Sequence record: ON529858.1
Length of the DNA stretch: 64,000 nt
Strand: one strand, 5' to 3'
Shown here: one piece after another, positions 2,497-50,436 of the stretch
Layout: each line of letters begins with the position of its first letter
How positions within the stretch are numbered: position 1 is the stretch's first letter
Notes under the pieces: model-generated
What the model was told of the DNA's origin: nothing
The model's database searches: none
What the model saw: the letters and a program-made list of their open reading frames with translations, nothing else
Made by a program: the position numbers and the translations under genes

Positions 2497-2933
2497 AGGC
2501 TCTGGAACACACCCTCGCTAACTCCGGCGGCTCCAAGGTGGAGCAGGACCGGAGGGCTTGGTTGGAAAGCGTAAAGGCGGCCCAGGCCGGAGGTGATACC
2601 TCCGACCTGGACGCCGAACTCGACGAGGAACCGGACGACCCGGAGCCGGCCGGTAACCAGCCCTTCCCAGACTTGATGTGGGCCTGGGACGGCTTTTGGC
2701 GCCTCTCGAACAAGCGACCCCAGGGCTTCAACGGCCCTCTGCGCATCCCCCTTACCGAGATCGAGTCCTTCGCGCGTCTGAAGGGCTGGGATCACGAGAA
2801 GCGCAACGATTTTCTCTTCTACGTCGACAAGCTGGACGAGGCCTACATGGTCCACGTCGCAGCCGAGATCAAGAAGCAGGAAGACGCCACCAAGATCAAC
2901 GCCGGACAGCCGCCCCCGAAGGGACGGCGGTAG
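2490..2933 (+). CDS. Frameshift extension of the tail assembly chaperone (gpGT analogue)
   Basis: Open -1 frame LLKALEHTLANSGGSKVEQDRR... containing WDGFWRLSNKR...RIPLTEIESFARL, typical of gpT-like segments. Confidence 0.7.
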   Translation, partial: LLKALEHTLANSGGSKVEQDRRAWLESVKAAQAGGDTSDLDAELDEEPDDPEPAGNQPFPDLMWAWDGFWRLSNKRPQGFNGPLRIPLTEIESFARLKGWDHEKRNDFLFYVDKLDEAYMVHVAAEIKKQEDATKINAGQPPPKGRR

Positions 2934-2939
2934 GGGACC

Positions 2940-5900
2940 ATGACCGAACAAACCAGCTTCAAGATCGACTCCAAGGGGGCTCAGCGCGACCTAGACGCGC
3001 TGGCCTCCGCACTCGATCGCGCCGCCGGCGCCGCTGGTCGGATGGACCGGGACTTCGCCAAGGCGGCGCAGTCGGCCGACAAGAACCTCAAGACCGCGTC
3101 GCGCGCGATGGAGCGCTACGCCCAGATCGCGACCCTGCTGTCGCGCATCAAGTTCGCCGGCGACGGCGCAGGCCAGATCGCCAAGTTCGGTCAGGCCCTG
3201 GACTCGCTTGGCAAGGCTCGCTCGATCAAGCCTGAAACCATCAAGGGCTTCGTCAACCTCATCGACGTCGCCGCCCGCGCTCAGCGCATCGCCTTCAATC
3301 CCGCTTTCGGCAACTCGATCCGCGACATCGCCTCGGCGATGGACTCGCTCGGCCGCGCGCGCCCGCTGCGCGACGGGACCCTGAAGTCGTTCGTCCAACT
3401 CATCGACGTCACGTCCCGCGCCCAGCGCGTGCGGATCGACCCTGGCTTCGCCGCCGGGATGAAGAACATCGCCGGCGCCATGGACTTTGTCGGCCGCGCC
3501 CGCGCCATCCGCCCGCAGACCCTGAAGTCCTTCGTCGACTTCATCGAGATCGCGGCCCGCTCCCAGCGCCTGAAGTTCGACCCGTCCACGGCCCAGAGCC
3601 TGCGGGCGTTCGGCGCTGCCATCTCGCAACTGAAGCCGCCGGGCAAGGCCGCCATCGAACGTCTGGACAAGATGTTCGTCGTGCTGGCGAACGCCAAGAA
3701 GATTCCGAACGCCGCCGCGATCGCGCGTGACCTGGACATGGTCGCCGCCGCCGCCGGCCGCGCCTCCAACGCCCTCGGCGCCCTGCCCGCTCGTATGCGC
3801 AGCGCTGGCGGCGGTGGCGGCGGACGTGCGTTCCAAGAGACGGCCGCAGGCGCGAACGCCGCGACCAAGGGCTTCTCCAACTACGCCTCCGGCGCCGAGA
3901 AGGCCGGCAAGGGGACCTACACCCTGGGCGAGCGCCTGCGCGGTCTGAACCACCGGTTCTCGATCGCCTATCAGGCCGGCACCCTGTTCACCTCCATGTT
4001 CGCCTCCTTCACGCTGGGCGGGTTCATCAAGGGCATCTTCGATGCCTCGATCAACCTCGCGAAGCTGGAGAAGTCCATGACCTTCGCGACGCGCTCGACG
4101 GAGGCCGGTCACCAAGCGACCATGCGCTTCATCGGCGCCGCCCAGGAAATGGGTCTCAGCCTGAACTCGGTCTCCGAGTCGTTCGGCCGCTTCTCGATCT
4201 CGTCGGGCGCCGCCGGCATGTCGCAGGCTGAGTCGTCGGAAGTCTTCATGTCCGTCGCCCGCTCGCTGCAAGTCGTCGGCGCGTCCGCCCAGCAGACCGA
4301 ATACGCGATGTATGGTCTGACGCAGATGATTCAGAAGGGCAAGGTTTCGTCCGAAGAGTTCAACCGTCAGATCGGTGAACAAATCCCCGGTAACGCCACG
4401 GCCGGCGCCATGGCGATGTCCAAGATTCTCGGCCGCAAGGTCGAACTCGCCGAGTTCTTCGACATGATGCGCAAGGGGCAAATCATGTCGAAGGAGTTCT
4501 CGATCGAGTGGGCGCGCGCCCTGAACTCGATGTTCGCTCCCATGCAGGGGATGCTCCAGAACCGTCCTGACCTCGCCGTCAACCGCCTGAAGAACGCCTT
4601 CACGATCTTCCAGCAGGAGATCGGCAAGAACCGCTTCATGACCGAGATCGGCGTCCAACTGAACCGCCTCGCGGGTCTGTTCGGCAAGGTCGAGAACGGC
4701 GTCTTCAAGCTGCATGACCCGGTCCGGGAACTTGCCAAGCAACTCGGCCACAACCTCGCCAACGGCGTGCGTGTGATCGGTGACGCCCTGGTCTGGGCGT
4801 TCGAGAACATGGACAAGCTGATCCTGGCCGGCAAGGGCATGGCTGCTCTCCTGGTCGGCTCGACCTTCTTCTCCTGGGGCAAGAGCGCGATCGAGGCCGC
4901 CGGCAAGATCATGCTGATGGTCGGCGCCATGCGCGCCGCCAAGGTTGAAGCCGCCGCGACCGCCACGGCGAAGACGGTCCAGGCCGCCGCCACCACGCCC
5001 GGCATCGTCGGCGCGGGTGCGTCGACGGCTGACATCATCGCCCAACGCAACATGCGCGGCATCGCGCCCACGGCGGTCGGCGGCTCTGTGACCACCGCTC
5101 AGAAGTTCGCCTCGAACAACGAATACGGCGTCAACACCTTCGCTCGCCCGACCGGTCCCGACGGCAAGCCCGCCCAAGGCATGGGCGCACGTCAGTTCGG
5201 CCGCCGCGCCCTGTCGCCCGCGCTCGCCAATGCCGGCGCGGCTTCCGCTGCTGCCTCGGGCGCAGGCCAGATCGCATCCGCCGGCACCGCCGCTGCGGGC
5301 GCGGCTCCCAAGGTGAACATGCTGAGCGGCGCCATCCGTGGCCTGGGTCTGGCGTTCGGCGCCTTCTCGCTCCTGGCGATCGCCGCCGTCGCAACCCTGG
5401 CCGTCTTCTCGGACAAGCAGGTCGAAGTCGCCGGCAAGTCCGTCAAGGGCGGAGACATTATGATGGGCTCGCTCGACGTCGTCGGGAAGTCCTTCAAGGA
5501 TTGGGCCAAGACCACCGGCGACAGCATCACCGGCGTGTCGGGTTCGTTCGACTGGCTGGACAAGAACGCCGGCGAACTGATGGTCGGCCTGATGGCGGCT
5601 GTCATCACGATCGGCAAGACCTTCCTGACCGTCTTCACCTCGATCGGCAAGATCATCGGCACCGTCGTCGCCAACATGATCATCCCGGCGATGATGGGTA
5701 TCTCCAAGCTGGCGAAGGGCGACATCATCGGCGCCGCCGAGACCTTCCTGAAGGAATCCTTCACCGGCAACGCCAGCCGCATGATGGAAACCGCCCGCGA
5801 GATCGGTGGAGACTTCGTCGCCGCCGCCGACTACGAAGGCACCGCCACCTCGATTCGCACTGCCGCGATCGGGCGCGCCACCGACCGCAACGCCGCGAAC

Positions 5901-46424: not shown

Positions 46425-47174
46425 TCAGCGGGCGTAGCGAAGTTCGGGCGCGATGACGGAGATGCCGGTAGCCGGATCGACCTTGGCCCAATCCCAGACG
46501 AACCAAGCGTAGGGGAACCGGGGCGAGCCGCTGCTGTCGGCGATCCAGCGCGGGCGATGCCGCAGCGTGATCTTCATGGCGAAGGCCGGGTGGTCGAAGA
46601 GGTCGGACCGGCTCTTGGCGCAGTCCCATTCGTGGCGGCAGAGCACGGCCACGAGACCGGCCTGGGGCTGCATCAGGTGCAGCGCGTGCCGGGTGATCGC
46701 CTCGGCGTCCTTGCCGTAGGGCGGGTTGGTGATGATCGCCGACGGCAGTTCGCCGTTGTTGCCGGGGCGGAGCGCGGCGAACTCGCTCAGGGTGATGGGA
46801 AATGCGCCGGCGGTCTCGACGTCGACGTTGTCGACGGCCCACTGGAGAAAGGCTTCGTCGCAGGCGGCGGTGTCGTCGTCGCGATAGATGCGCAGGAAGT
46901 CGATCAGCTTGTCCGAAACGAACCCATTCTGGGAGACGATGTCCGACGTGTAGACATCGCGCACCAACTCGCGCAGGGGCTCCGACACCGCACCGTCGCC
47001 GACGCAGGGCTCCCAGGCGATGTAGCCGGCGAGGTCGTCGCCGATGATCTGGAACAGACCGTCCAGCGCCGGGCGCGGGGTGGCGTAGAAGTCGTTGGCG
47101 ATGCGCTCGTAACCGGAGGTGCCGAGAGCGGACGGGTCCTTGCGGGGCGCGTCGGAGAGGGGTGCGGGGTTCAT
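46425..47174 (-). CDS. Amino (N6-adenine/N4-cytosine) DNA methyltransferase
   Basis: DFYATP, WEPCVGDG, IITNPPY. Confidence 0.82.
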   Translation of the reverse strand: MNPAPLSDAPRKDPSALGTSGYERIANDFYATPRPALDGLFQIIGDDLAGYIAWEPCVGDGAVSEPLRELVRDVYTSDIVSQNGFVSDKLIDFLRIYRDDDTAACDEAFLQWAVDNVDVETAGAFPITLSEFAALRPGNNGELPSAIITNPPYGKDAEAITRHALHLMQPQAGLVAVLCRHEWDCAKSRSDLFDHPAFAMKITLRHRPRWIADSSGSPRFPYAWFVWDWAKVDPATGISVIAPELRYAR

Positions 47175-47206
47175 GGTTAACGTCTGTCTCACACTCGGAG
47201 AAGGAC

Positions 47207-47222
47207 GTCAAGATTCACGACG
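47207..47222 (-). promoter_or_regulatory. Phage promoter motif copy
   Basis: Minus strand CGTCG-TGAATC-TTGAC. Confidence 0.72.
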
Positions 47223-47243
47223 TTCGAGGTCAAGAATCCTGCA

Positions 47244-47272
47244 TTGACGGCGTGAAACGCCCGATCTATAAG
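47244..47272 (+). promoter_or_regulatory. sigma70 promoter of the + strand RNA
   Basis: TTGACG-N17-TATAAG. Confidence 0.75.
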
Positions 47273-47277
47273 GGTGG

Positions 47278-47755
47278 CTCGAACCAGGGCGGTCCTGCTT
47301 CGCCATCCCCCAGCAGCGCAGCGCCGGGGTGGATCATCCGCCCTGGGGGAGACTGCCGACGGCGTCTAGCAGGACGTTGGGAGCGACAACAGGCTACGTC
47401 CGGAACCCCGCTGCGCCGTTGGGGGTGACCTTCCAAGCCGAAGTAGGAGTGGAGCAAAGCCTGGACCGGCCCTCCACGGTCGTCGCACGGGGCGGGGCCT
47501 ACAGACCGTGATGAGGCGAACGCCGGCCGAGACTAGGCAACCAGGGCGTGACAGCAGGCAGAGACCGCGCTATCCTTCATCGTTCGCAGAACGCTAGGCG
47601 TAGACACCGGACGGTGTCGGTAGCAGATCGGTGGTGGAGACGTCCGCTCCCACCGGCAACCCATCCCGAGGGTGGCAACGAGACGGATGACGCGGCGCCG
47701 GCCGAGAGAAGACGATGGCGATGAGAGCCCTGCTGGCGCGCCGGCAGGGCTTTTT
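47278..47755 (+). ncRNA. Candidate ~480-nt pseudoknotted structured RNA
   Basis: Promoter-to-terminator unit with no codon-biased ORF; several perfect interleaved helices. Confidence 0.7.
47726..47755 (+). terminator. Intrinsic terminator
   Basis: AGCCCTGCTGG-CGCG-CCGGCAGGGCT then TTTT. Confidence 0.8.
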
Positions 47756-47760
47756 CATGG

Positions 47761-47798
47761 AAAAGGCCATTTTCACCGCACAGTGAAAATGGCCTTTT
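47761..47798. terminator. Perfect 16-bp inverted repeat between convergent RNA units
   Basis: AAAAGGCCATTTTCAC-CGCACA-GTGAAAATGGCCTTTT. Confidence 0.7.
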
Positions 47799-47807
47799 GA
47801 GTGAAAC

Positions 47808-47894
47808 TGGAGGAATGTGGCGGAATCGAACCGCCGGGTCTCTCGACCATCACAGATTTGCAGTCTGTGGCCTTACCACTCGGTCCAACATCCC
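47808..47894 (-). tRNA. tRNA with GCA (Cys) anticodon and long variable arm
   Basis: GGGAUGU/ACAUUCC acceptor, ACAGA-CUGCAAA-UCUGU, GGCGG-UUCGAUU-CCGCC, U73, encoded CCA. Confidence 0.88.
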
Positions 47895-47897
47895 GAC

Positions 47898-47931
47898 CAA
47901 AAAGCCCGCTCGGCCGAAGCTGAGCGGGCTG
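47898..47931 (-). terminator. Intrinsic terminator closing the large minus-strand RNA
   Basis: AGCCCGCTCAG-CTTCGG-CCGAGCGGGCT-TTTT. Confidence 0.75.
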
Positions 47932-48096
47932 TTCCGGTAACCAGGGGAGTGCCGTAGCTGTCCCAAGGTGCTGAGCGACTTGTGCGAGGGCGATCCGCCA
48001 ACCTCACCAGACCCCGGCGCCGGGTTCTGGACCTCACGTCGGCCACCTCGAACTCCGAAGAGGGGGAAGCCGATGAGGGCATGTGGGTCCCAGGGT

Positions 48097-48165
48097 CCTC
48101 TCCCGCGCTATCAACCCGGTCGGTTCCCTGGTCAGGCCCTCTCCCGCGCTATGAACCCGGTCGGT
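48097..48165 (-). repeat. Two 28-nt direct repeats (1 mismatch) 13 nt apart inside the large RNA
   Basis: ACCGACCGGGTT(C/G)ATAGCGCGGGAGAGG at 48138-48165 and 48097-48124. Confidence 0.9.
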
Positions 48166-49025
48166 GCCTTCATAAATAGGAAACGCCGCCGAACCCGAGG
48201 GCGCGGCGGCGTGTCTTTCGATGCCCTGAGACGAAGCGGGCTATCCAGAGAGGCTTCCGGGATTATCGTTTCCCCAGGTCGTCCAGAAGGCTTTCACCTC
48301 CCTACCCCTCGAATGACGCTTTGTTTAACCGGGTGTCCCCGGAGGAAGTTGCTGCGCTCCCTGTCGTATTGGACCACTCACCTGCGTCCCCTTCCGAATA
48401 CAGCCGCTAAGCCGCACAAGGAAGTCTGTTCAAGCGGACCGTGCGCCTTGCAGGGCTAACACGGCGACCTTACGTCCGAAGACCAAGGCCAGGAGTCATC
48501 TGTCGTCCAACACCGGCAAGACTTTTGCTTCTTGACAAAAATGCCTGTTTGACACGGGCTACCTACCCGTCGAGGTTTATTCCAAGGACACGCTTACCTG
48601 GAGGTCCATCGGCTTTTGACCGACAAAATGCTCCGCGCCCCAATGTGAACCGAACAGCCCACGGTCTACAGGACGCCGCCGAGTTTGACCCCGACTTAAC
48701 CCTGGAGACTGGACGCCGCACTTAACCCATGTCGTGGGTCTCGCACTAAACGCCCTACGCCTTGGACCTCGATGGTTCTCTCGGAGGATTCCGGCAGCGG
48801 GAGCATCCCTGCTCTCACCTGAACCCATGGTGTTGCCATGAGCCTTGACCGGCCGAGGTAGCCCCTATCCCCCATACGCCTCCATCTCTGGAGCCATCTG
48901 AGGGACACCCTGGTAGGGTGGGTCCCGACGCTTGCTTCGAATGACCGACTTGCGCCGGCGCCGGACTGGAAAGTTCCGACTTCACCACCGGTTGCCCGGC
49001 GGCCTCGCTCCGAAGCGATGAGTGA

Positions 49026-49054
49026 GGTTTAGCGACGTCATTCGTCGCGGTCAA
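49026..49054 (-). promoter_or_regulatory. sigma70 promoter of the large RNA with the operator palindrome in its spacer
   Basis: TTGACC-N17-TAAACC; CGACG-N5-CGTCG at 49033-49047. Confidence 0.7.
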
Positions 49055-49084
49055 CAACATTTTTCGAGGGACCCGCCGCGAAGC

Positions 49085-49093
49085 TGTGGATAA
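49085..49093. promoter_or_regulatory. Perfect DnaA box between divergent RNA promoters
   Basis: TGTGGATAA. Confidence 0.5.
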
Positions 49094-49122
49094 CTTTTCT
49101 TGCTGCCTGGGTGTCAGGATTC

Positions 49123-49151
49123 TTGACACAGGGTGTCAACGAGCATATAGG
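49123..49151 (+). promoter_or_regulatory. sigma70 promoter of the tmRNA-tRNA operon
   Basis: TTGACA-N17-TATAGG. Confidence 0.8.
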
Positions 49152-49156
49152 GGAGA

Positions 49157-49570
49157 GATCGAGCAGATGCCTTCGGGCTGAAAACTGTGACATGAAAGAC
49201 GGGCCGGACTCGGGTGCGATTCCCGACGGCTCCACCAAAAGCGCCCATCCGGCATGTCAGACCTTCGGGTCGGTGTCAGGGGATGAGGCTAGTCCCCGGC
49301 GAAGAGGTGTCGTAGAACGCGCCCTCTACCGAAAGCCAGGGTGGACGCTTTTGTTGGGGCCGACCAGATTCGACGGGCGTTGGTAGTGAAGTGGGTTCGA
49401 TGGGTGGCTCCCCCAGCCAAGCACTGACAAATGTCGCTGCAAATGACAACGCTCCGTTCGCGGTGCGTGAAGCCATCGCCGCCTAATAAGCGGTAGAGGG
49501 GTGTCCGGAGGGGCGCCTGTCACAAAAAGCCACTCGCCTCCGGGCCGGTGGTTCCCTCCACCACCAGTTT
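49157..49570 (+). ncRNA. ssrA: Circularly permuted two-piece tmRNA (3' boundary approximate)
   Basis: Acceptor piece ending CUCGGG-UGCGAUU-CCCGA-CGGCUCC-A-CCA (49237) precedes the coding piece starting GGGGCCG (49356); G3-U70 pair; tag ORF ANDNAPFAVREAIAA* at 49439-49486; inter-piece pairing UGUGACA/UGUCACA. Confidence 0.93.
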
Positions 49571-49663
49571 CCAAAGGTGGGCTGCAACCTCCTACGTCGT
49601 GCTTCTCGGAGGCGACGGGTGGACCGCACCAAGCGCGGTCCTGACAAAGCGCAGCACATTTAT

Positions 49664-49742
49664 CGCGGGATAGAGGAGTCCGGTTGTCCTCGTCTGCCTC
49701 ATAAGCAGAAGATCGGGGGTTCAAATCCCCCTCCCGCATCCA
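49664..49742 (+). tRNA. tRNA-CAU, initiator-like (C1:A72, A11-U24) but lacking the three G-C anticodon-stem pairs
   Basis: CGCGGGA/UCCCGCA, UCUGC-CUCAUAA-GCAGA, GGGGG-UUCAAAU-CCCCC, U73-CCA. Confidence 0.92.
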
Positions 49743-49876
49743 TTCTCCTGACCCTCTCATCCGGTGCAACTCCGGGCGGGCGCAACCCGTGGGGGTATGG
49801 AGTGAAGCCCAGGAGCCGGAGCGATCCGTCCGCTGGGCTGGGCCGGTCCTGCGGGGCCGGCCCCGACTTTCTTAGG

Positions 49877-49961
49877 CGTGCGATGGCCGAGTGGTCTATG
49901 GCGGCGGGCTCATAACTCGCTGGAGCAATCCGCGTTGGTTCGAATCCAACTCGCACGTCCA
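49877..49961 (+). tRNA. tRNA-CAU with class II long variable arm
   Basis: CGUGCGA/UCGCACG, GCGGG-CUCAUAA-CUCGC, V-arm UGGAGCAAUCCGC, GUUGG-UUCGAAU-CCAAC, U73-CCA. Confidence 0.9.
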
Positions 49962-49970
49962 AGCCTTCCG

Positions 49971-50003
49971 AACCCCCGGCGCCGCATAGGCTCCGGGGGT
50001 TTT
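49971..50003 (+). terminator. Intrinsic terminator of the tmRNA-tRNA operon
   Basis: AACCCCCGG...CCGGGGGTTTT. Confidence 0.75.
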
Positions 50004-50008
50004 GCGTA

Positions 50009-50374
50009 TCAGGCTCGGCGGTCCGCCTGGGCGAGCCGGGCTTCAGCGCGCTCGTGCGAGCGTTGCTCGGCGGCGTAGCGGCTCATGTCCTTCAGGTGGG
50101 CGATCGCCACGGAGTCGGGCGCGCCGACGGCCCGGAACGGGACCTTGGGCGCCATCTCGACATAGCGATGCAGGAGAGGTTGGAAGGGGACCTTGTGCTC
50201 GATCGCGACGCGGGCCAGGGCGGCGGCGACGATGGCGACGATGATGGTCTCAGGCGTCCGGGTCGGTTCTATGTTCCACAGACCAGGAACCGACTGTCCT
50301 GGGTGCTGCGTCTGTCTCGATACGTCGTCTGCGGCGTAGCGGAACAGGTTCTCATAGGCAGTGCCCTGTAGCAT
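50009..50374 (-). CDS. Hypothetical protein
   Basis: ~121-aa ORF with GGA RBS. Confidence 0.55.
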   Translation of the reverse strand: MLQGTAYENLFRYAADDVSRQTQHPGQSVPGLWNIEPTRTPETIIVAIVAAALARVAIEHKVPFQPLLHRYVEMAPKVPFRAVGAPDSVAIAHLKDMSRYAAEQRSHERAEARLAQADRRA

Positions 50375-50436
50375 CAGCGGTCCTTGTCGTGTGTGGGTTG
50401 ACAAGGGGTAGCACTGTTTATGCTACGCTTCTAGCC

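Follow-up and report, generated by a model that had tools for sequence, protein, structure and literature searches.

What is encoded in a 2.8-kb stretch without protein genes in a phage genome, and what connects the RNAs that it specifies? The stretch in question occupies positions 47240-50003 of a window of 64,000 nucleotides (the whole stretch of DNA analysed) from sequence record ON529858.1. Positions 47200-50050 of the window were 100% identical to positions 190461-193311 of this record, the 207-kb genome of Brevundimonas phage vB_BgoS-Bajun (Bajun), which is a member of the Dolichocephalovirinae (phiCbK-like phages). We found that the stretch is a conserved stable-RNA gene island of the Dolichocephalovirinae, a real RNA-only cluster that is largely translation-related. 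It carries a two-piece transfer-messenger RNA (tmRNA), three tRNA genes, an RNA whose sequence places it in the GOLLD family, and a further non-coding unit, called unit A here. Phage tRNA islands with GOLLD, the annotated tmRNA and a published GOLLD copy were already known, and a conserved motif of about 95 nucleotides in unit A and the conserved class-II-shaped tRNA-Cys and tRNA(CAU) are new here. The full explanation given below, which comprises the identities of the RNAs, the synteny, the motif as a punctuation cassette and the inferred transcripts, processing and cage, has in our estimate a probability of about 0.7.

A protein-free island with conserved gene order

No coding sequence is annotated in GenBank between BAJUN_03100 (DNA methylase, ending at window position 47174) and BAJUN_03150 (starting at 50009). 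The GenBank features inside the island are tRNA-Cys, tmRNA and two tRNA-Met genes and nothing else, and tightly packed minus-strand genes lie on either side. The G+C content of the island is 0.59-0.62, compared with 0.64-0.69 on the upstream side and 0.62-0.67 on the downstream side. The six longest open reading frames (ORFs) of the island, 88-163 amino acids in length, had no match in Pfam or PHROG, and no island ORF was conserved in the relatives. The original prediction of a 2.8-kb protein-free RNA island was thus borne out, and its bounds proved precise: position 47240 is 4 nucleotides upstream of the TTGACG of the first promoter-like site (47244-47249), and 50003 is the final U of the last terminator. 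The accompanying claim that every identifiable member concerns translation held for four of the six genes (the tmRNA and the three tRNAs).

Synteny in related phages had been named as a check, and the comparison showed that position and gene order are kept across the whole subfamily. In all Dolichocephalovirinae genomes examined, the island has the DNA methylase gene on one side and the helicase gene on the other, with synteny seen in phiCbK, Colossus, CcrPW, Rogue, BL10, a metagenomic contig, Gurke, Marchewka and Kabachok. The tRNA-Cys gene is inverted in Bajun, phiCbK, Rogue and BL10. Beside the helicase of five more distant IMG/VR helicase relatives (25-46% identity), no tRNA or tmRNA was found.

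The large RNA of the minus strand

The prediction had counted two large RNAs in the island. Two long non-coding stretches do exist, and the minus-strand one matches GOLLD, but the plus-strand one is kept only as the motif of about 95 nucleotides described below. The reference for the GOLLD family (RF02032) is reportedly Weinberg et al. 2009. In a permissive Rfam scan, positions 48641..48223 of the minus strand matched the model over its full length (1-416 of 416) with 104 bits and an E-value of 1.4e-27. This score is lower than the 150-bit gathering score of the family, which is a curation threshold and not a biological feature, and the Bajun copy is missed in a default Rfam scan because it falls below that cut-off. 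The phiCbK copy at the same position, between tRNA-Cys and tmRNA, scored 165.3 bits, above the gathering score. From its promoter (49054-49026) to its terminator (48212-48170), the RNA would be about 845 nucleotides long (48175..49020, minus strand, ends inferred), which agrees with the length of about 800 nucleotides or more of GOLLD RNAs. Its variable 5' domain (about 49020..48642) aligns loosely with that of phiCbK, as the family description has it, and the gene has tRNA-Cys on one side and the tmRNA-tRNA unit on the other in a phage genome. On these sequence grounds the second large RNA is a GOLLD RNA, and it is already catalogued: Supplementary File S3 of Kretsch et al. 2025 (Nature, PMC12286853) lists ON529858.1:c191902-191484, which is window 48641..48223 exactly.

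The same report showed by cryo-electron microscopy that the env-38 GOLLD forms a homo-14-mer RNA cage of unknown function, noted that GOLLD genes are typically near phage tRNA islands with tRNAs sometimes embedded in their linkers, and proposed that the cages enclose tRNAs or ribosomes (PMC12286853). By homology with the solved structure, the Bajun RNA would assemble into a 14-mer cage, and by this analogy the earlier idea of a scaffold would not be far off for GOLLD. The Bajun copy shares with the family the full-length match of the 3' domain, a variable 5' domain of about 400 nucleotides, the phage origin and the place beside tRNA genes. It differs in being G+C-rich (0.57) where the consensus linker is A/U-rich, and its linker has no embedded tRNA, whereas the phiCbK copy has a tRNA-Gly-like insert. 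The annotated 'tRNA-Gly(UCC)' of phiCbK (L002, 3138-3211) sits in the GOLLD linker (within 2789-3275), which fits the published remark on embedded tRNAs.

At this site GOLLD was present in Bajun and the phiCbK group only, and was not found in Rogue, BL10, Colossus or CcrPW. The published alignment places the GOLLD of CcrBL9 (NC_048047.1, 83990-84405) at a different genome position (PMC12286853), so that gain or movement of GOLLD may have happened repeatedly in the subfamily.

The tmRNA and the tRNAs

The two-piece (permuted) tmRNA is at 49145..49577 on the plus strand. It scored 87.9 bits against tmRNA_permuted (RF04321, gathering score 47) and 57.4 bits against alpha_tmRNA (RF01849, gathering score 50) in Rfam, and ARAGORN reported the permuted order, with the acceptor piece first. 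In the tRNA-like domain, GGGGCCG pairs with CGGCUCC-ACCA and forms G3:U70, and the tag frame (49433-49489) encodes (V)AANDNAPFAVREAIAA, the tag VAANDNAPFAVREAIAA being closed by two stop codons. A tmRNA was at the same place in all relatives examined. The Bajun tmRNA is a standard alphaproteobacterial two-piece tmRNA: it shares with that type the order of acceptor and then coding piece, the G3:U70 pair and a tag ending in AA before the stops, and it differs in being phage-encoded, in its own tag sequence and in its apparent co-transcription with two tRNA(CAU).

ARAGORN found all four genes, namely tRNA-Cys, the permuted tmRNA and the two tRNA(CAU), and the three tRNAs scored 56.4, 54.3 and 42.1 bits against the Rfam tRNA model (gathering score 29). 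Altered CAU and GCA tRNAs, all with U73, had been expected from the first reading, and this was confirmed: two of them have stem-loop variable arms, one has C1xA72, and all three have U73 and an encoded CCA end.

The tRNA-Cys(GCA) at 47808..47894 on the minus strand has a class-II shape with the variable-arm stem-loop GGUC-GAGA-GACC, and its minimum-free-energy fold is a five-arm cloverleaf. In 10 of 10 phages compared, this tRNA is 85-89 nucleotides long with a long arm, U73, an encoded CCA end and covarying acceptor stems. The second tRNA(CAU), at 49877..49961 on the plus strand, is also class-II-shaped and may be a Met, an Ile2 or another tRNA. Instead of the short variable loop (4-5 nucleotides) of canonical class-I tRNAs, tRNA-Cys has an arm of 16 nucleotides and the second tRNA(CAU) one of 15 nucleotides, and these arms are kept in all relatives. 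Of nine phages compared at position 73 of the second tRNA(CAU), seven have U, the metagenomic contig L016 has A and Gurke has C. The Bajun tRNA-Cys also has a G3:U70 pair, the main identity element of alanyl-tRNA synthetase, which is not in the nine relatives compared and may be incidental.

The first tRNA(CAU), at 49664..49742 on the plus strand, is initiator-like. It has no Watson-Crick pair at 1:72 (C1xA72 in Bajun), A11:U24 and an enlarged D loop. The 1:72 combination is C1xU72 in five relatives and U1-A72 in Colossus, CcrPW and L016; A11:U24 is found in Bajun and the phiCbK/Rogue group, the T loop is of the initiator type, and position 73 is U or C. The three G:C pairs that close the anticodon stem of initiators are missing, with UCUGC/GCAGA in Bajun and two G:C pairs next to the loop in the relatives, and we therefore call the tRNA initiator-like and not a proven initiator. 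Together, the tmRNA and the tRNAs would provide ribosome rescue during infection, and decoding capacity for initiation, Cys and AUG/AUA.

In its anticodon arm, the phage tRNA-Cys presumably resembles bacterial tRNA-Tyr, a likeness that is a lead only. A Tyr tRNA was found in none of the phiCbK-like phages by Gill et al. 2012, who described tRNAs as the only RNA elements. According to Mukai et al. 2017 (PMC5389517), a long arm together with G73 or U73 suggests recognition by seryl-tRNA synthetase (SerRS), and U73 and GCA are the main identity elements of cysteinyl-tRNA synthetase. The allo-tRNAs and selC* tRNA-Cys of that study share with the phage tRNAs the long variable arm with U73 and the GCA anticodon with U73. 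With an acceptor stem of 7 bp and a T stem of 5 bp, both class-II-shaped phage tRNAs depart from the 8/4 or 9/3 configuration and are therefore not allo-tRNAs in the sense of Mukai et al.

Unit A carries a conserved three-hairpin motif

Unit A is a predicted non-coding transcription unit of about 477 nucleotides (47280..47756, plus strand) without a supported ORF, and it may be two shorter RNAs, from 47280 to about 47575 and from about 47583 to 47756. Its fold had a z-score of -2.47. No Rfam family matched unit A at E<=10, and it was rejected on this basis as a known large RNA (ROOL, RNase P, 6S, group I/II intron and others). Compared with the relatives, only about 60-95 nucleotides were conserved; alignments with six of them kept the motif alone, which excluded a large RNA conserved from end to end. 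The proposal that unit A acts as a large scaffold was accordingly not upheld, and what is kept of it repeats like a punctuation cassette between cargo genes.

The three-hairpin motif is located at 47475..47572 on the plus strand (nhmmer E 8e-14). Its first hairpin, P0 (47475-47510), is variable, and the 3' strand of P0 adjoins UGAs, the beginning of the core UGAsGCGAAC that is invariant in all relatives. GCGAAC leads into P1, in which ACGCC (47520-47524) pairs with GGCGU (47545-47549) around a loop that varies from 11 to 21 nucleotides (11-17 in all but two copies) and often starts with GGCCGAGA. After UGAC follows P2 (47553-47571), which has an AGAG loop in Bajun and is a 6-7-bp hairpin with an AGA(G) loop across the copies.

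We analyzed covariation in an alignment of 25 distinct copies. The results showed a covariation score of 0.229, compared with 0.088 in shuffles (0 of 500 shuffles reached it), and 83.6% of cells were paired, compared with 74.1% in shuffles. Three pairs of P2 had 6-11 double changes each, the P2 pair 48-63 included eight G.U pairs, and P1 had three compensated changes; the helix of P0 was 5.8 bp long, compared with 4.7+-0.33 bp in shuffled upstream sequence. The restriction of G.U pairs to one strand and the variation in loop length point to an element that acts as RNA and speak against a DNA site bound by a protein dimer, and with a half-site spacing of 11-21 nucleotides in P1 a dimeric transcription-factor site was rejected. 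The motif is a candidate structured RNA, in no Rfam family, with an unusually invariant core. In the literature searched on non-coding RNAs of phiCbK and Caulobacter phages, we found nothing on unit A or the motif.

Two further elements belong to unit A. An internal promoter-like site (47548..47576, plus strand, GTGACA-17-TATCCT) overlaps P2 and is the sole promoter-like site called by a generic consensus promoter scanner. A degenerate terminal copy of the motif spans 47683..47755 on the plus strand (weak nhmmer match at 47687-47716), and in it an intrinsic terminator (hairpin 47726-47751, U run to 47755) stands where P2 would be. We conclude that unit A consists of a complete module of a repeated cassette and a partial one fused to a terminator, and is not a large ornate RNA.

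Distribution of the motif and the variable cargo of the locus

The motif was found in 38 phage records, all of them Caulobacter or Brevundimonas Dolichocephalovirinae and always in this island only, with one to about seven copies each, and also in two IMG/JGI contigs (L016 and L063); a metagenome scan contributed one contig. When 185,579 representative bacterial and archaeal genomes were scanned for the exact core, each of the 39 hits proved to be a chance match by nhmmer, so that no true copy was found there. There is one copy in Rogue, two in Gurke, three in Colossus, four in CcrPW and seven in L016. Bajun has one copy and the degenerate terminal one, phiCbK and BL10 each have one and another after tRNA-Met1, Marchewka has three and a terminal copy, and Kabachok has three (a count that excludes the terminal region).

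All copies are on the strand of the tmRNA. In Colossus, CcrPW and L016, a copy adjoins tRNA-Cys on its 5' side, and L016 has another 5' of its second tRNA(CAU). In phiCbK and BL10, a copy comes immediately after the 3' end of the first tRNA(CAU), and this tRNA stands in place of P0. The motif also lies upstream of apparent ORFs, namely gp415 of CcrPW and two ORFs of L016. In arrays, the copies are spaced by 220-280 nucleotides, and the sequence that separates them is unconserved and free of ORFs. A TTGACn-16/18-nAnAnn comes immediately after nine of 27 copies, and about four further copies have GTGACrr-N14-GCTAnnnC overlapping P2, including Bajun 47548-47576; the arrangement GTGACrr-N14-GCTAynnC after motif copies occurs in L016 and Marchewka as in Bajun. 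In both Bajun and Marchewka (L139, 4515-4590), the last copy is degenerate and a canonical terminator replaces P2.

The 197-amino-acid ORF gp415 of CcrPW (L004, 2669-3600), which has no family match, is flanked by a motif copy on either side, and Colossus has a single copy at this place, directly before tRNA-Cys; gp415 looks like a cassette-type insertion. In L016, positions 2870-2995 after a motif copy contain tRNA-like D, anticodon (ACG) and T arms and a CCA end, without a matching 5' acceptor strand and without a call by ARAGORN; this may be an irregular or defective tRNA.

The islands of CcrPW and L016 contain small ORFs. In the Brevundimonas jumbo phages, a Ro60 gene (TROVE, E 2.6e-12, and vWA) lies directly upstream of the motif array (Marchewka, L139, 2083-3468; Gurke, L138, 2132-3502; Kabachok, L140, 2085-3470), and weak YrlA-like (Y RNA) matches lie upstream of the Ro60 gene, one of them overlapping an annotated 'tRNA-Ser'. 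Colossus and CcrPW have the Ro60 gene elsewhere in the genome. No Ro60 homologue was found in Bajun, phiCbK or Rogue, and the search of the Bajun island for YrlA (RF02553) at E<=10 gave no match. The likeness to Ro60-YrlA systems is therefore confined to the jumbo relatives, in which the TROVE/vWA gene and the YrlA-like RNAs adjoin the motif array, whereas neither is in the window or in Bajun; the motif itself differs from YrlA in having no tRNA-like T and D arms. The absence of Ro60 from Bajun, phiCbK and Rogue, its distant place in Colossus and CcrPW and the separate YrlA-like RNAs of the jumbo phages led us to reject the motif as a Ro60-binding Y RNA.

Promoters, terminators and predicted transcripts

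Putative promoters and terminators were read from the sequence. The promoter of unit A (47244..47272, plus strand, TTGACG-17-TATAAG) is of a type that also occurs at the equivalent place in the alignment of Colossus and phiCbK. The minus-strand unit, unit B, has the GOLLD promoter at 49026..49054 (TTGACC-17-TAAACC, -10 region GCTAAACC), with which the phiCbK GOLLD promoter aligns as TTGACG...GCTAGAAC; the predicted transcript start is also conserved. The promoter of the tmRNA-tRNA-tRNA unit, unit C (49123..49151, plus strand, TTGACA-17-TATAGG), aligns to the 5' flank of the alpha_tmRNA model. These three sites would fit TTGACGS-N10-14-GCTANAWC, the Caulobacter housekeeping promoter consensus.

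The plus strand has a terminator hairpin with a U-run at 47726-47755 and an intrinsic terminator of the tmRNA-tRNA unit at 49972..50003 (ACCCCCGG...CCGGGGGTTTT). A bidirectional terminator hairpin (AAAAGGCCATTTTCAC...GTGAAAATGGCCTTTT, 47761..47799) separates unit A from tRNA-Cys, and the GOLLD terminator on the minus strand (48212-48170) consists of the hairpin 48212..48183 and a U-rich tail. Between the two tRNA(CAU) genes there is also a G+C-rich hairpin (49840..49863, plus strand), whose U tail is weak. The three promoter-terminator units of the sigma70 type that had been predicted are thus all readable in the sequence, and the GOLLD promoter is kept in phiCbK, but the generic scanner did not call the three unit promoters, and its own counts were not above chance. 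The reason is that none of them has T as the sixth base of its -10 hexamer. The case for them therefore consists of the reading of the sequence and the conservation of the GOLLD promoter in phiCbK.

Based on this arrangement, we infer that a host RNA polymerase of the sigma-70 type would transcribe the island from the three consensus-like promoters. Unit B, on the minus strand, would yield GOLLD first and then a conserved leader with the class-II-shaped tRNA-Cys, and the precursor of unit C, on the plus strand, would be cut into the two-piece tmRNA, the initiator-like tRNA(CAU) and the class-II-shaped tRNA(CAU).

The leader between the GOLLD terminator and tRNA-Cys (47896..48170, minus strand, about 280 nucleotides) contains a CUUCGG hairpin, the block GGGACAGCUACGGCACUCCCCUGG and two direct repeats. 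The CUUCGG hairpin with its U run (47935..47896, minus strand) ends 1-2 nucleotides before the 5' end of tRNA-Cys and covaries in phiCbK, Rogue and BL10. Upstream of it, the block (about 47946-47969, minus strand) is common to the same three phages; it holds GCUACGG, the 5' acceptor strand of the tRNA-Cys of Rogue and Colossus. The fold of the leader had a z-score of -0.97, an ordinary stability that gives weak thermodynamic support. The 34-nucleotide direct repeats (48094-48127 and 48135-48168, 91% identical and 41 nucleotides apart) were not found in phiCbK, Rogue or BL10, and could be regulator binding sites or a recent duplication.

Outside the island, a promoter-like site on the plus strand (50397-50430, TTGACA...TATGCT) lies between the minus-strand genes BAJUN_03150 and BAJUN_03160 and may drive an antisense or small RNA.

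A proposed punctuation cassette and its alternatives

We propose that the motif is a transcribed punctuation cassette of about 95 nucleotides that is specific to the subfamily. Its hairpins would end or stabilize one short transcript by forming its 3' end, or would adjoin the end of a tRNA, and a promoter inside or just after the motif would restart transcription of the next cargo. This model would explain the differences in cargo between the relatives. A precedent is given by the PeSL cassettes of T4-like phages, composite terminator/promoter elements that mediate cargo shuffling (Arbiol et al. 2010, PMC2839356; Comeau et al. 2014, PMC4122927). Like PeSLs, the motif is a short conserved repeat with a stem-loop and a promoter or promoter-like site, placed between variable cargo in a plastic region, and indels flanked by two copies occur in both cases (CcrPW for the motif). 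Unlike PeSLs, the motif is longer, contains P1 as an additional invariant hairpin, conserves some unpaired bases, borders on RNA genes and not only on ORFs, and has no sequence similarity to PeSLs; for the motif, promoter function and recombination are putative.

Several observations weigh against this explanation. Besides the GOLLD score below the gathering cut-off, P1 is almost invariant and therefore carries little information on structure, and the lone Bajun copy of the motif folds no better than shuffles (z +1.33), so that the structural case is purely comparative. The 35 invariant nucleotides exceed what a terminator and a promoter need and suggest a specific protein or RNA partner, left unnamed by the cassette model. 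The -10-like elements that follow the motif differ among copies, and four copies adjoin tRNAs and leave no room for a standard promoter. Finally, the terminator-like hairpin directly upstream of tRNA-Cys leaves the expression route of this tRNA unexplained.

The invariant nucleotides leave room for an alternative in which the motif is the conserved 3' scaffold of trans-acting small RNAs, with a variable 5' targeting region of 130-200 nucleotides and the invariant P1-P2 part as a protein-binding handle for an RNA chaperone or nuclease. We consider this possible, although doubtful. The architecture of a variable 5' part and an invariant 3' handle agrees with it, as does the conservation of unpaired nucleotides that is typical of a binding platform, each module could have its own promoter, and the phages that encode Ro60 have more motif copies. 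However, no partner or target was identified, the copies that adjoin tRNAs or precede ORFs have no obvious guide part, and the Ro60 genes have their own YrlA-like RNAs upstream and are absent from Bajun, phiCbK and Rogue.

A wider reading, that of the original prediction, takes the whole island as a coordinated module of anti-defence or translation rewiring, in which the tRNAs and the tmRNA replace host molecules cleaved by nucleases and the long RNAs serve as decoys or scaffolds. The unusual tRNA bodies (long arms, U73) are kept throughout the subfamily together with the tmRNA and apart from the main tRNA array, the contents proposed for GOLLD cages would suit such a role, and at this site some relatives have further cargo for RNA surveillance (Ro60, YrlA-like RNAs). 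Set against this, the island has no linked gene of defence or counter-defence, unit A lacks conservation as a large RNA, and GOLLD is missing at this site in Rogue/BL10 and Colossus/CcrPW, which keep the rest of the island, so we regard the reading as unlikely. We hold it decidedly improbable that the island is one system in which the class-II-shaped tRNAs are charged or handled unlike host tRNAs (charging by SerRS, or escape from anticodon nucleases) and the motif is a new protein- or RNA-binding handle that marks transcripts for processing or for loading into or onto GOLLD cages.

The position of the motif directly beside the 5' or 3' ends of tRNAs in several phages, and its highly conserved core with flanking helices, could also point to a small self-cleaving ribozyme or another processing signal that frees adjacent tRNAs or modules from long precursors. 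This is very unlikely in our judgement: no Rfam ribozyme matched at E<=10, the CCA end of the phiCbK tRNA is 6 nucleotides from P1, so that cleavage at the helix would not yield a mature end, and the main tRNA arrays of these phages have no motif. Hand threading showed that the core has no CUGANGA...GAAA of the hammerhead and that the order of helices does not fit the double pseudoknot of hepatitis delta virus (HDV), which removed hammerhead and HDV-like/theta ribozymes from the candidates; a general tRNA-processing signal was rejected because the motif occurs only in this island.

That the units are mis-annotated as non-coding and hide short protein genes is scarcely credible, since the island ORFs of 88-163 amino acids and the hypothetical proteins annotated across unit A on the opposite strand in phiCbK and Rogue are countered by the missing family matches of the window ORFs, by a phiCbK ORF that has no Bajun counterpart, no Pfam match and a PHROG of unknown function as its sole family match, by the spurious long ORFs expected at 60-66% GC, and by the nature of the conserved sequence, a structured motif whose G.U pairs are on the plus strand. 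The two proteins opposite the motif RNA, phiCbK gp290 (L002, 1806-2378, minus strand) and Rogue gp307 (L005, 2223-2636, minus strand), have no Pfam match and are probably mis-annotations.

Implications for the subfamily

The Dolichocephalovirinae share a fixed, subfamily-wide locus with changing cargo, namely GOLLD, Ro60 with YrlA-like RNAs, or small ORFs. Since the cargo varies at a fixed locus, these phages are a natural comparative system for the function of GOLLD, and among close relatives both GOLLD-positive and GOLLD-negative phages have Caulobacter crescentus as their host, which is genetically tractable. The class-II-shaped tRNA-Cys and tRNA(CAU), which occur in every relative compared, raise a question of aminoacylation identity that is directly testable.

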